NCBI RefSeq assembly: GCF_052425735.1
Contig: NC_135762.1
Location: 25,916,001 to 25,980,000, forward strand
From: Oculina patagonica
Lineage: Eukaryota
Direction: 5' to 3'
DNA length: 64,000 bases
Under the pieces are notes generated by a model. That model saw nothing but the letters and a program-made list of their open reading frames with translations, had not been told where the DNA came from and ran no database searches. The position numbers were made by a program, and so were the translations under genes. This document shows, piece by piece, positions 58,269-64,000 of the stretch (the first letter of the stretch is position 1; the number at the start of each line of letters is the position of its first letter).

Positions 58269-58593
58269 TTAAGACCCTTAAGATCTCCCTAAGACCCGAG
58301 TTGCGTCCCTTTTTCCGCGCTTTTTTCACTCCCTGCGAGAGAGACATCTGACGTTCAAGCCGAAAACTTCTATATTGATTACGTTCCCTACAGAGATTCG
58401 TGTGGTGTTCTCTGATTGGTTGTTGACAAATTTGAATTTTCGCGCGAAATTGACAACCAATCAGAGATCTCTTATAGAGCTACGTCATTAGCAGGGAATT
58501 TTGTCGAAAAGGGCGTAGACAAAACACCGAAAAACACATGAACGTTTTGTCATTTATTCTCACATTTAGTGGATCATTTAAACTATTTTCTTG

Positions 58594-61500
58594 TCAAGGC
58601 TGATAAAGTATTCCCCTCCACAACGCTATTGATTTAGGGAACCCTATGTCGACCTGCCTCGCCGTATGGTTAAATCGGTAAAAGAGGTTTTCTTTGAAGA
58701 AGTAAGTGTTGCCGTCGTTTGCGGAAAACACGGTATCGAGGTTGTCCGGAACGCCTTTCCAGAACGAGGCTATCGACCGCGGGTAGCCTGGGTCCACTGC
58801 CTGGGTTGTGTCGTTGAAGCGATAGTAAAGCGATCCTTTAAAGAAATAGGTGATGCCATTGGTGTATCTGAAACGAAGATGAAAGCGTTTACCATTCAGC
58901 CAGAGTCGGTCTCAGTGTTTTACATTGGGATCAACGAAGTATTTTTCTAAATTAAAATATAATTAATTCACAATTTTCCCTTGCTATGCTTCCTTAACTT
59001 CCTACTCCATTCTATAATCACACACATGGCTCACACCCCTCCTTTTTGCCCTGCTGAAGGGTTAACGCTCGTAACTGGTACATAACTCGTCACTGGTACT
59101 TTACCTGCAAACTTTGCCGCGCGCTTTGGTTTACTCTTTACTACCCACGTGTTGGCATTGTTGGCAAACACTTAAAGGAACTACGTAATGCACTCACGAA
59201 CGCAATCACGAGGGTAATAATTGGGTCTTAAACCCGGTCTGATTCATGAGTCAAAACGCAATAATCATTTGGTCAACGCACCTCCTACAGTCCATGCAGT
59301 GAGGTAACCCAAAGGCCCCTTCATCAAAAACAGCCATTTTAAGCATAAGGCGTTCATCAATTTCTTTGAAACGCAGGAAACCGTTTGTATTGTTAATGCA
59401 GAGTATAAAGACTCTGAACGTTCTTCAGCTTTCTAACTAAGCTCTCTTGTGGTTAGTTTTACCTGAAAACAGCATCCACTCTATTCGGTACTCCTTTCCA
59501 AAACGAGCTTATGTCGCGCGGATAGCCATCTTGCACTTTTTCTTGGCCGTTGTCGTACCGGTAGTAAAGTTTTCCTTTAAAGAAGTAAGCAAATCCATCA
59601 CTCCAGAGAAACGCCGCGTCTACATCCGCCGGAACTCCACCCCAGGCTGCCAACGCGCGCGGATATCCGACATCAACTTGGCGATACAGATCGTTAAAGC
59701 GCCAATAGCTGTCATTCTTGAAGAAGAACGTGTAGCCGTTCAGGTGTCTAGAGAAAGTTAAATATTGAATTAAAAGCATGTGTTAGTCACGTAGTATATC
59801 GTGCATTACGTCATGGCTGTAATTAACGAATGAAGGTAATTAGGTAAAACGCTGTGTTCTAAAATTAATTCAGAATCAAAACAATTTTGGTTGCTTCTTT
59901 TTCTGGTGACCTTAAATTTGCAATTGTATGCTCTCCTTTTCTGATTGCCCGCCTATCCTCCCCCGTCTTCATTTACCTATCTACTTTACTGCCTACCAAC
60001 CTAGCGTCGGGTGGGGACTGACCAACCTTCAGTACCTACCTACCTACCTACCTACTTACCTTCCTACCTACCTACCTACGTACGTACCTACCTACTTACC
60101 TTCCTACCTACCTACCTTCTTACCTACCTACCTAATTGCCTACCTGCCTGCCTGCCTAACTACCTACCTACCTAATTGCCTACCTACCTACCTAATTACC
60201 TGCCGACTCACCCACCCACAGACCTAGCTACCTACCTAAGTGCCACCCTCCTTCCCTTACTACCTACCTACAGTAGCTACTTATGTGCCGACCTCCGTAT
60301 AGACTAACTACCAACCTTCCTACATACTTAAGTACCTGTCTCCCTCCCCCACGACCTACCTNNNNNNNNNNNNNNNNNNNNNNNNNNNNNNNNNNNNNNN
60401 NNNNNNNNNNNNNNNNNNNNNNNNNNNNNNNNNNNNNNNNNNNNNNNNNNNNNNNNNNNNNNNNNNNNNNNNNNNNNNNNNNNNNNNNNNNNNNNNNNNN
60501 NNNNNNNNNNNNNNNNNNNNNNNNNNNNNNNNNNNNNNNNNNNNNNNNNNNNNNNNNNNNNNNNNNNNNNNNNNNNNNNNNNNNNNNNNNNNNNNNNNNN
60601 NNNNNNNNNNNNNNNNNNNNNNNNNNNNNNNACATCTTTGATACTTAGTCTTTATACACCTGCTTGCCAATCATAGCACTACTTTCTTCCAATCCTGACC
60701 TACTCTCCTATTTACTTGCTGCGCAGACAGGCGAGACTAAATCATACCTAAACGCCGTATAGCGAGTTAGCTCGGGCTCACCACTCCACCACTGCATTAC
60801 TGACTTGGGGTAGTTGGAAGACACACCAATAGACTGATCACTATGCAAAAAGAACCAGTTTTGTGTATCCTTATAAACATAAACGCCTCCATTGTACCAC
60901 GGTAAAGCGCCTTCAATGTCACTTGGGACCCCCTTCCAGTAGGAGCTCACCGAGCGCGGATAGCCGGGGTCCACACTTGCGGTGCGCGGATTGAACCTGT
61001 AGTATTGTGTTCCTTTGAAGAAGTACGTATAGCCATTCGAGTAACTGATGTTTTAAACAAAAGATTAAAAATAAGAGTAAATATAATTTAAAGAGTTTCT
61101 TCCCTGCTCTGGAATCGCGATTGTAAAATGAAATCAACTATAGAAACTAAAAAATAAAAAGGAAAAGCCAAAAGATGAGGAAAGCTAGAAACCAAAATTT
61201 GTTAGTCACCTTTTCCGAATATGTAGCGTGAGCACTTTTATGACCGATTGCCATTATAAATGGTCCTCCATAAAGGGACAGTATCAGGAGAATTCTTTTA
61301 AGTTTCGTGTAAACTATGCTATAACAATGAGAGGGTACTCACTGGTCTACTAAACAACCTTTTAAAAAAATAAACGAAAAGCATAAATAAATCCATTCTC
61401 TTAGATGTGAATAAGCCCTAATCAATGGTTTTTTATATGATTTTCTTCCAAGCAACACGGTCCGACTTTGTCAAGCTTAATTTTAGACCACTTTCTTCCT

Positions 61501-63410
61501 ACCTATTTATGGCCACACTACTTTTTAACAATTTTCATGACTAGTACAGTACGTTTTAGCAAGGCCAGGGCCCGGTTGTTCAAAGCACGATTAAGCTAAT
61601 CCAGGATTAGTGTGAAATTTGGTTTCAATTTTTTAACATTTCTTTGAGGCTTTCTGTTTATATTTTCTCGCCCCCAGTTTTGACGTGGACCAATCTCAAA
61701 CTTCACAAAACATTAGCTATGGAAAACCCTTCTTAACAAGAGAAATTAAAACCTCGATCATCTTTTAATCCTGGGTTTGCGTTAATCGCCTTTCGAACAA
61801 CCCGGCCCTGACCACTATTAGTGGATTTTTAATATATTACATTGAATTTCAAGTAGCACTAAATCTTGGTGACACTGTCCCTTAAATGCACAATGCAACA
61901 TCTACAATGTACTCAGTAAAACCGTTTCTAACTTTACAACTTTATTTATTTGCACCCTATACATTCAATTAAATTAACAATACAATAATAATAAAAAAAT
62001 AAAGTAAAGTGCATGGCTGCCCAGAATAACCACGATTGGCTAACAAGATTGGGCAGCCATACTTAGTTTTTATTACAATAATTATTAAAAGGTCAGGTAT
62101 ACTTAACATTTACATTTCAATTTGCCAAGATTTTACATAACAGTTATAAACAGACTATGTAATGAACTACTCAAGGGTAGCGACCACTTCATATTTAGTT
62201 ACGAGCCCAAAAGCTTCTTAAACGAAAAGCTATGTAGAACGACCTGTCTTCTTTCGCTATTCTAAGGTATACTAAATGCCTTACCTGATGACGTCATCTA
62301 TACCATTTGGCACGCCTACCCAGTAATCACTTATAAGCCGAGGGTAGCCTGGGTCCACACTCAGCGACGTGTCGTTAAACCGGTAATACGTTTTTCCCTT
62401 GAAGAAGTAAGTGAAGCCATTGGCGTATCGAAAGACGCCGTTTATAGAAGAAGGCACGCCTTTCCAATGGTCGCTTATTGGCCGAGGGTAGCCTGGGTCA
62501 ACGCCAGGGCGATTCTCGTTGTAGCGGTAGTAATTCGACCCCAGGAAAAAATAGACAAACCCATTTGACCAGCGAAAGACAGCGTCGATCTTACAAGGTC
62601 CTTGAAATTGGGAAGATAAATCATAAGTTAACAAGCTGTCGAAAAAAGCATTGGCTTAAATTGTGTTTAGTGCATTGGATTCTAAATGAAGTGGTCCGGA
62701 TTCGAGCTTGGCGCGCCGGGCTCCCTGTGTTGTGTCAGTGAGAAAGACACTACTCTACAACTACTTCAACTACCAGTACCACTGCTACTACCCCTAACTC
62801 TACCACTACCACCACCACAACCAATTTTCAGAAGGGTTAACCTAGGGGGGGGGGGGGGGGGGGGGGGCAAGAAGTACTTCAAGTTGCTTTACGCTGTAAA
62901 GAAACAGGAGCTATTCAACGCCCTAGCTAATTAATGCACCGCTACGCTTGAAACAATTCACCCTTTGCGCCTGATGGCAACAATAGTTTTTGTCCAGAAT
63001 AAGTTCAAAGTACCGTTACACCTTATCGTAGAAATATTTTAAAATATTCAATTAAAAGGAAGACAATATAGGTGTAACATTACTTACTGTAGATGTTTTT
63101 CATCAAGGTAGGTCTATAAGTCTTCACGTCTCGTTCCATTTTAGCTATCTGCCCTGGTGTAAATTCATACATACACTCATCTTCCATGACTATAAAAAAA
63201 TAAGAGAGAAAAGATGAATCTCATAAGGAGAACTCAATCAATGACCGACCGAACGACCGACTGGCAGACCGACCGACCCCAATCAATCAAGCAATCAATC
63301 AATCAATCAATAAAACAACCAATTAATCAGTCTGTCTGCCAGATGGTCAATCAATCAGTCCATCCGACCGTCAGTCAATCAGTCCATTCAGCCAGCCAGC
63401 CAGCCAGCCA

Positions 63411-63443
<33 letters not shown>

Positions 63444-63778
63444 CCGGTCGTCGCGCGCGCGCGCGCGCCCCCCGACCTTCATTCAGTCAGTCAGTCAGTC
63501 AGTCAGTCAATAACAAAGCGCTAAGGAGCATTAAGAAGCGCTGGTGTAAAACCAACTTGTGTTGCCCTTTAAAATAATTGTTATGAAAAATAAGCCTACA
63601 TGTTTCAAAATCTACGCGACTGCAAAACAAGTTACTTACAGCCCATGTAATTGTGAATTGGGTCCAGTCCACTTTGAGATTTACAGGTGTCGACCGGTTG
63701 GTCAGTACAGACATACGTGTAGTCATCACATCGTGGGGTGTCCGCGACTACATCATCATCTTCGTCCTTACAACGACC
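58594..63778 (-). CDS. Peptidase M43 (pappalysin/ulilysin-type) metalloprotease with eight C-terminal hemopexin repeats; 5' end beyond the window
   Basis: Exons 63778-63640, 63189-63088, 62600-62285, 61044-60748, 59747-59463, 58867-58594, all GT-AG and in frame. Translation GRC...DVVADTP...DTCKSQSGLDPIHNYMGFMEDECMYEFTPGQIAKM, then eight repeats of the form DAVFR..NG.TYFFKG..YYRFN.....VDPGYPR.I...WKGVP. Confidence 0.88.
60030..60361. repeat. (CCTA)n microsatellite followed by an assembly gap (60362-60631)
   Basis: Direct reading. Confidence 0.95.
61566..61810. mobile_element. MITE
   Basis: CAGGGCCCGGTTGTTCAAA ... TTCGAACAACCCGGCCCTG; relatives at ~21357-21617 and ~33769-34752. Confidence 0.7.
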
Positions 63779-63869
63779 CTGTCACACAGACATTTTTACA
63801 ATTACTGTCTGTTGTTTTTATTGGATAAATATGTGCATGTTTCATTTGTAATAACAGGGATATAAGTGG

Positions 63870-63882
63870 GATACAGACATGC

Positions 63883-63918
<36 letters not shown>

Positions 63919-64000
63919 GGGGAGACAGGCAGACAGACAAACAGACAGCCAACAGACAGACAGACGAAAAGACAGACAGACAGACAGGACAGACAAACAG
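63870..64000. repeat. (GACA)n microsatellite
   Basis: Direct reading. Confidence 0.95.

Follow-up and report, generated by a model that had tools for sequence, protein, structure and literature searches.

A coral M43 metallopeptidase joined to tandem hemopexin repeats: gene structure, predicted fold and relatives of LOC144653558 in Oculina patagonica

Gene structure and transcript evidence

The window analysed here, a 64,000-nucleotide (nt) stretch of chromosome C5 of the stony coral Oculina patagonica (contig NC_135762.1, positions 25,916,001 to 25,980,000), ends inside a minus-strand gene, LOC144653558, whose product joins a peptidase domain of family M43 to eight hemopexin blades. The gene has 11 coding exons and ten GT-AG introns, and the window holds its 3' two-thirds: six minus-strand exons within 63778-58594, with canonical AG/GT borders, that read in a single frame to a TGA stop at 58596-58594. 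A reading of this DNA made from its letters (hereafter the sequence-only reading) had proposed that two small exons, 63778-63640 and 63189-63088, splice in frame to the hemopexin exons; both were recovered at exactly these coordinates, with AG/GT borders and contig joints, and the motif string that it had quoted (D.V.DTP...DTC...) is present in the sequence.

Coding exon 6 (63640..63778), of which a genome search returned one copy, encodes the part of the M43 domain that follows the zinc motif, namely an acidic, Cys-rich segment, DTP, DTC and the NYM Met-turn, and is bounded by the RNA joints 63778/64199 and 63189/63640. Exon 7 (63088..63189; joints 63189/63640 and 62600/63088, in two to three runs) supplies the S1' aspartate D285, Cys286, FTPGQ and the C-terminal helix of the domain, and aligns with M43 domains of bacteria, fungi and corals. 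The hemopexin module starts exactly at the border of exon 8 (R-P-C-K-I-D), and from there each exon encodes two blades: blades 1-2 in exon 8 (62285..62600; Pfam Hemopexin, PF00045, 1.3e-33; joint 61044/62285), blades 3-4, the end of propeller 1, in exon 9 (60748..61044; 6.6e-17; joints 61044/62285 and 59747/60748), blades 5-6, the start of propeller 2, in exon 10 (59463..59747; 3.4e-27; joints 58867/59463 and 59747/60748), and blades 7-8 with the stop codon in exon 11 (58594..58867; 2.6e-24; joint 58867/59463). At least about 390 nt of 3' untranslated region lie below 58594, a contig of run X1 reaching 368 nt past window position 58570.

Beyond the window we took in the next 20 kb, which holds the five upstream coding exons, also on the minus strand, at L003 4133-4087 (with the ATG), 3271/3268-2952, 2408-2374, 1794-1528 and 1234-1199 (window coordinate = L003 + 63000; IGHYFGLFHVCE), as read from open frames, from the DNA and from identity to P0260. 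P0260 is XP_078369717.1, a 704-residue 'uncharacterized protein LOC144653558 isoform X2 [Oculina patagonica]', and our 689-residue model is exactly identical to its residues 16-704. Isoform X1 (705 residues) differs from X2 by a single Ser in the signal peptide, because a NAGNAG tandem acceptor (cag/cag) lies at L003:3268-3271 (window-equivalent 66268/66271). The sequence-only reading had called for an extension past 64 kb, and these exons supplied what it expected there: the zinc motif HEIGHYFGLFH, a probable signal peptide and a pro-segment.

Junctions were tested with Logan contigs from three runs, each of a different study and under its own organism label, placed on positions 58570-64560 in window coordinates (locus L005). 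The contigs carry the joints 58867/59463, 59747/60748, 61044/62285, 62600/63088, 63189/63640, 63778/64199 and 64234/64528, of which the last two are the upstream joints nearest the window; every joint is CT..AC on the plus strand, that is, GT..AG on the minus strand, and a single 2444-nt contig of depth 41 carries all seven. Among them is the joint between 63088 and 62600, on which the proposed link of peptidase to hemopexin exons depended. Intron 9 (59748..60747), which includes an assembly gap of Ns at 60362-60631, is skipped exactly (1000 positions, GT..AG ends) by contigs of runs X1, X2 and X3, so that the gap is intronic, no exon is hidden in it and the mRNA frame is continuous; orthologues are collinear across the same junction. 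We take the contigs as mRNA because they are intron-less and the M43 exon has a single genomic copy, a combination hard to explain otherwise. This RNA evidence consists of assembled contigs. For the 5' end of the mRNA we rely on the RefSeq model and on orthologues, and the 9 reads obtained from a polyA raw-read run (X22) do not suffice to fix transcript ends. The gene is real and is expressed in a stony coral.

Several introns carry repeats. The start of intron 5 (63779..64000) is rich in (CTGT)n, and stretches at 63280-63520, 63845-64000 and 62846-62870 hold tetranucleotide (GACT/GATT)n and (CTGT)n microsatellites, together with a run of (GGC)n and a tract of poly-C; repeats of the type at 63280-63410 are present at no fewer than 100 sites across the genome. 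Within intron 8, at 61570-61970, contig depth rises to thousands with many loose ends, marking a dispersed, highly transcribed repeat outside the mRNA of this gene.

The catalytic domain

A 102-residue peptide spliced from three exons, exon 6 among them, scores 48.1 bits against Peptidase_M43 (PF05572; E 1.6e-12, cut-off 23) and only 14.5 bits, below the cut-off of 24 and over the zinc helix alone, against Peptidase_M10; an initial 185-residue test peptide had remained below the M43 threshold at 20.7 bits and passed once the zinc-motif exon was added. Orthologues score 37-49 bits against Peptidase_M43, with no M10 match in the same Pfam scan. When the orthologue P0151, 77% identical, was used as query for a PDB sequence search, its catalytic part matched mirolysin (2e-20), ulilysin (1e-16) and PAPP-A/PAPP-A2 (about 1e-6), and no matrix metalloproteinase (MMP) catalytic domain was among the matches.

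The zinc site, H221-E-I-G-H-Y-F-G-L-F-H231, is intact, with an intron splitting the motif after HE: exon L003:1794-1528 ends in A-V-H-E/gt, and the 36-nt exon L003:1234-1199 encodes I-G-H-Y-F-G-L-F-H-V-C-E. Because the intron divides the motif, a HExxH scan of the 20 kb upstream found nothing relevant; Pfam on the individual exons of the N-terminal catalytic half likewise matched nothing, and a whole-genome Pfam M43 search missed LOC144653558 because its exons are short. The sole find of that search was a PAPP-A-like gene on chromosome C1 (C1:36322000-36328500; L006:1967-4786, minus strand), a 939-codon frame with Laminin_G_3 and Peptidase_M43, largely in one exon, which is a separate locus.

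The remaining landmarks of the M43B subfamily are also in place. The N-Y-M Met-turn begins at residue 277; D285, the S1' aspartate, lies within M-E-D-E-C and aligns with the Y-T-x-D-x-C segment; and R36-T-C38-G of the pro-segment aligns with R-C-G of the pro-segments of bacterial M43B homologues. An extra Cys pair (H-V-C... / ...P-R-C) is specific to scleractinians. Pfam recognises only M43 and Hemopexin in LOC144653558, and the LamG, LNR and CCP modules of the PAPP-A type were not found by Pfam in this protein or its orthologues. The catalytic domain is a lower, or unicellular-type, pappalysin (MEROPS M43B).

Predicted structure and the hemopexin propellers

P0260 was modelled with AlphaFold2 from an alignment of 58 rows; the model reached a mean predicted local distance difference test score (pLDDT) of 87.4, mostly above 90 across the catalytic domain, and a predicted template modelling score of 0.72. 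Foldseek matches were re-aligned with VIA-align 2. The catalytic part superposes on promirolysin (model 36-355 on chain 21-328; Z 27.1, root-mean-square deviation (rmsd) 2.8 Å), proulilysin (model 33-312; Z 26.2, 2.4 Å), ulilysin (model 86-311; Z 25.8, 1.9 Å) and PAPP-A (model 43-312; Z 20-21, about 3.5 Å), the matches to lower pappalysins spanning 214-252 residues, and the alignment to promirolysin begins exactly at R36 of the latency motif, on chain residue 21.

Could LOC144653558 nonetheless be an ordinary M10 MMP with a divergent catalytic domain? Its overall layout is MMP-like (signal peptide, Cys-switch, catalytic domain, hemopexin), the best match to its hemopexin part is the MMP-14 hemopexin domain at 37% identity, and RefSeq names the Orbicella orthologue MMP-14-like. 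The profile scores and the PDB sequence matches given above speak against this, as does the model, in which the catalytic domain fits promirolysin and ulilysin at Z 26-27 and rmsd 1.9-2.8 Å, while full-length MMPs align only at rmsd 13-15 Å and are driven there by the propeller. We consequently rejected the M10 identity, to which we allow next to no probability; that the domain is M43 and not M10, as the sequence-only reading had held, agrees with all three lines of evidence.

The same reading had described eight blades as two propellers without a hinge, and the model concurs: the blades are predicted to fold as a pair of 4-bladed propellers and not as a single ring of eight, with residues 312-508 superposing on the MMP-13 hemopexin domain (Z 24.8, rmsd 1.7 Å) and residues 510-702 on that of MMP-14 (Z 26.8, rmsd 1.8 Å). 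The catalytic domain closes with a helix that runs to about residue 310, and the exon-border R-P-C-K-I-D follows at once, which leaves no hinge. Serum hemopexin (1qjs) likewise has tandem 4-bladed propellers, and aligns over model 312-702 at Z 26.4; the orientation of the pair differs (rmsd 8.7 Å), and the coral pair has no long inter-propeller linker, shows no evidence of the heme-binding histidines and is fused to a protease. In PDB sequence searches the hemopexin part of P0151 matched MMP-14, vitronectin and MMP-2. All three introns separating the hemopexin exons are in phase 2, and this regular series of two-blade phase-2 exons suggests internal exon duplication; in a blade-by-blade comparison all exon pairs were 39-51% identical, which does not reveal the pairs that were duplicated.

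Distribution and relatives

Orthologues were found in Orbicella faveolata (a partial model, 83% identical to the Oculina protein), in Stylophora pistillata and three Pocillopora species (about 75% each) and in the octocoral Paramuricea clavata (47%), and several further transcript contigs carry family members with M43 and Hemopexin. All full-length members have eight blades and the C-terminal end W-[RK]-G-x-L-Y. The occurrence of eight-blade M43 members in scleractinians and in an octocoral places the architecture before the hexacoral-octocoral split. No named member from sea anemones, Acropora or non-cnidarian animals turned up in our searches, which were word-seeded and so cannot prove absence.

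The sequence-only reading had expected automated annotation to label such genes as MMPs, which happened in one case: the Orbicella protein is called 'matrix metalloproteinase-14-like'. Elsewhere the expectation failed, the Oculina protein being 'uncharacterized', that of Stylophora 'Extracellular metalloprotease' or uncharacterized, those of Pocillopora uncharacterized, hypothetical or unnamed, and that of Paramuricea 'zinc metalloprotease'.

In a divergent sister group (P0153, the sequence at locus L007, with P0263, P0364 and P0365) the eight blades are kept, but between one and three zinc ligands have been lost, as has the Cys switch; P0263, for example, reads Q-E-x-G-I...W, and the third His is Leu in P0153. 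To judge from these losses, the group probably consists of pseudo-proteases.

Origin of the domains

The closest catalytic domains outside the coral family are bacterial or metagenomic (45-47% identity), followed by fungal ones (38-41%) and a choanoflagellate domain (about 36%). As the sequence-only reading had remarked, a microbial-type M43 domain thus sits in an intron-bearing gene, and it had suggested a phylogeny of the domain to examine a horizontal origin. We inferred a quick tree of 146 domains with IQ-TREE (LG+C20), with the PAPP-A-like domain of the coral itself as root. In it the anthozoan domains form one group (Shimodaira-Hasegawa-like approximate likelihood ratio test, SH-aLRT, 78), which lies outside a 135-row group (SH-aLRT 91) with all sampled bacterial, fungal and algal domains, and adjoins the choanoflagellate domain and the PAPP-A root. 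On this tree the catalytic domain forms a deep lineage of its own, not nested among bacteria, and recent horizontal transfer is not supported.

Recent acquisition of the M43 domain from a bacterium and its fusion to a host hemopexin gene, or contamination of the assembly, would account for the bacterial and metagenomic nearest relatives, and would suit a literature in which 'unicellular pappalysins' are recorded from archaea, bacteria, algae and fungi alone (PMC6949598). Such a history is hard to reconcile with the five spliceosomal introns within the M43 part, one of them inside HE/IGH, with the location of the gene on a 34-Mb chromosome scaffold, with orthologues in at least five scleractinian genera and one octocoral, or with the placement of the anthozoan group outside the bacterial, fungal and algal domains. 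Given where the domain falls in the tree, the ten introns of the gene, its chromosomal setting and its orthologues, we exclude contamination and recent transfer from a sampled bacterial lineage; recent acquisition in general we consider improbable. Vertical descent and a very ancient transfer, before the anthozoans radiated, are indistinguishable on this tree, because its root rests on long branches.

On the hemopexin side, the nearest paralogues in the genome are MMP genes on chromosome C13, 42-51% identical over two blades, with a hemopexin intron at another position than in the M43 gene. They form a tandem cluster at C13:34.25-34.37 Mb (L008, L009), with an M10 exon encoding HELGHSLGL, hemopexin exons and a hydrophobic C-terminal tail, resembling membrane-type MMPs.

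Fusions of metallopeptidases to propellers seem to recur. A JGI metagenome contig encodes a 760-residue protein (P0264) with Aspzincin_M35 and about eight hemopexin repeats. All the leads from the ESM Atlas were below threshold (0.85): they pointed at bacterial clusters of M43 or hemopexin with metallopeptidase domains, among them Actinomycetota clusters in which hemopexin is paired with Reprolysin-like domains, and M43 with propellers of the PLL type.

A tentative scenario, to which we give rather less than even weight, is that anthozoans retain an ancient holozoan lower pappalysin, of a type supposed to be absent from animals, that was fused, before the hexacoral-octocoral split, to MMP-type hemopexin repeats and exon-duplicated to two propellers. 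The matrixin layout would then have arisen a second time, independently, and the coral protein would be the first lower-type pappalysin with several domains in an animal; it would have a catalytically dead sister branch and would probably serve in remodelling of the mesoglea or skeletal matrix.

Proposed protein and mechanism

We consider it very likely that LOC144653558 encodes a conserved anthozoan secreted zymogen consisting of a signal peptide, an R-T-C-G pro-segment, an M43B domain and two hemopexin propellers. The signal peptide would span about residues 1-28 and direct secretion, and the M43B domain about residues 89-314. A model for latency is provided by promirolysin, in which a short pro-segment, running backwards through the cleft, keeps lower pappalysins latent: its Arg21 enters the S1' pocket in a salt bridge to Asp289, and its Cys23, in a conserved Cys-Gly motif, sits on the zinc (PMC6949598). 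Asp289 also accounts for the P1' Arg/Lys specificity common to ulilysin, mirolysin and PAPP-A (PMC6949598). By analogy, R36 of the short coral pro-segment would enter the S1' pocket and C38 would lie on the zinc as a cysteine switch; activation would entail loss of about 50-60 N-terminal residues; and the mature enzyme, with the conserved S1' Asp D285, would cut before Arg or Lys. The tandem propellers are probably exosites for binding of matrix, substrate or partners, like MMP hemopexin domains, and the enzyme may act in remodelling of the extracellular matrix.

Several observations weigh against this proposal. The Tyr of the tyrosine switch is replaced by Phe in Oculina and Orbicella, and the sister group lacking zinc ligands shows that catalysis is dispensable in some members of the family. 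That the blades make two propellers is predicted from a shallow alignment (58 rows), and in Oculina C317, at the start of blade 1, lacks the canonical Cys with which it would pair where blade 4 ends; the canonical propeller disulfide between first and last blades was not found there, no Cys being present at the end of blade 4 or 8, and a Cys is kept at the blade 4/5 border in P0152 and P0153. The transcript runs, moreover, are only guessed to be RNA.

The first two of these observations might be taken to mean that the Oculina protein itself is a non-catalytic hemopexin-type binding protein, a pseudo-protease like P0153, P0263, P0364 and P0365. Oculina, Orbicella, Pocillopora/Stylophora, P0152 and Paramuricea nevertheless retain intact, across a deep divergence, all three His as well as the catalytic Glu, the Met-turn and the S1' Asp, and the latency motif, needed only by an active enzyme, is likewise conserved in those members. 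We therefore regard a non-catalytic role for the Oculina protein as quite unlikely, more so than a recent bacterial origin of its domain, and retain the zymogen as our reading.

Comparison with known proteases and significance

The coral protein has the catalytic fold of mirolysin (Tannerella forsythia) and ulilysin (Methanosarcina acetivorans), at 25-28% identity to the solved structures, and shares with them HExxHxxGxxH, the NYM Met-turn and the S1' Asp; the R-T-C-G cysteine-switch tetrapeptide in the short N-terminal pro-segment of promirolysin is identical in it. It differs from them in being encoded by an animal gene with ten introns and in having the extra scleractinian Cys pair and Phe at the tyrosine switch. 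Bacterial lower pappalysins lack hemopexin, having either no additional domains or PKD or T9SS sorting domains, whereas the coral protein has two C-terminal hemopexin propellers. With PAPP-A and PAPP-A2 it shares the peptidase family (Z 20-21) and the nature of a multidomain animal protein, but in PAPP-A an enlarged catalytic domain is accompanied by LamG, LNR and CCP modules, where the coral protein pairs M43 with Hemopexin.

The likeness to MMPs (M10, e.g., MMP-14) is one of module order, and extends to the hemopexin blades, which share 37% identity with MMP-14 and 42-51% with the MMPs of the coral itself. In its catalytic domain the coral protein falls in a different metzincin family, M43 instead of M10; the pro-segment is of the pappalysin type, with about 50 residues, instead of a three-helix prodomain of about 80; and two propellers follow without a hinge where an MMP has one.

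Neither part is new: lower-pappalysin domains of M43B with a cysteine switch are known, as are hemopexin propellers, and the combination of the two has been annotated automatically in RefSeq. A full-text literature search for the architecture and six orthologue accessions found no paper describing it, and neither a Nematostella matrisome paper nor a coral venom preprint mentions an M43-hemopexin protein. Lower pappalysins have been listed only for unicellular organisms (PMC6949598), and a 2025 survey did not find a multidomain form bridging lower and metazoan pappalysins (PMC11925022). We see LOC144653558 not as a new mechanism but as a clean case of convergent MMP-like architecture and as an annotation trap.

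In the metzincin literature pappalysins fall into two kinds, 'unicellular' enzymes of a single domain and the huge animal PAPP-A type. The coral gene indicates that animals can carry a lower-type pappalysin with a mirolysin-style cysteine switch motif, built into an MMP-like matrix-protease layout, and so offers a natural experiment in convergent protease architecture. The present names, 'MMP-14-like' for one orthologue and 'uncharacterized' for others, are a warning for annotation; since inhibitors and rules of substrate specificity differ between M10 and M43, the label affects how coral stress and disease transcriptomes are read. For corals themselves, LOC144653558 is a candidate protease of the extracellular matrix and of biomineralisation.

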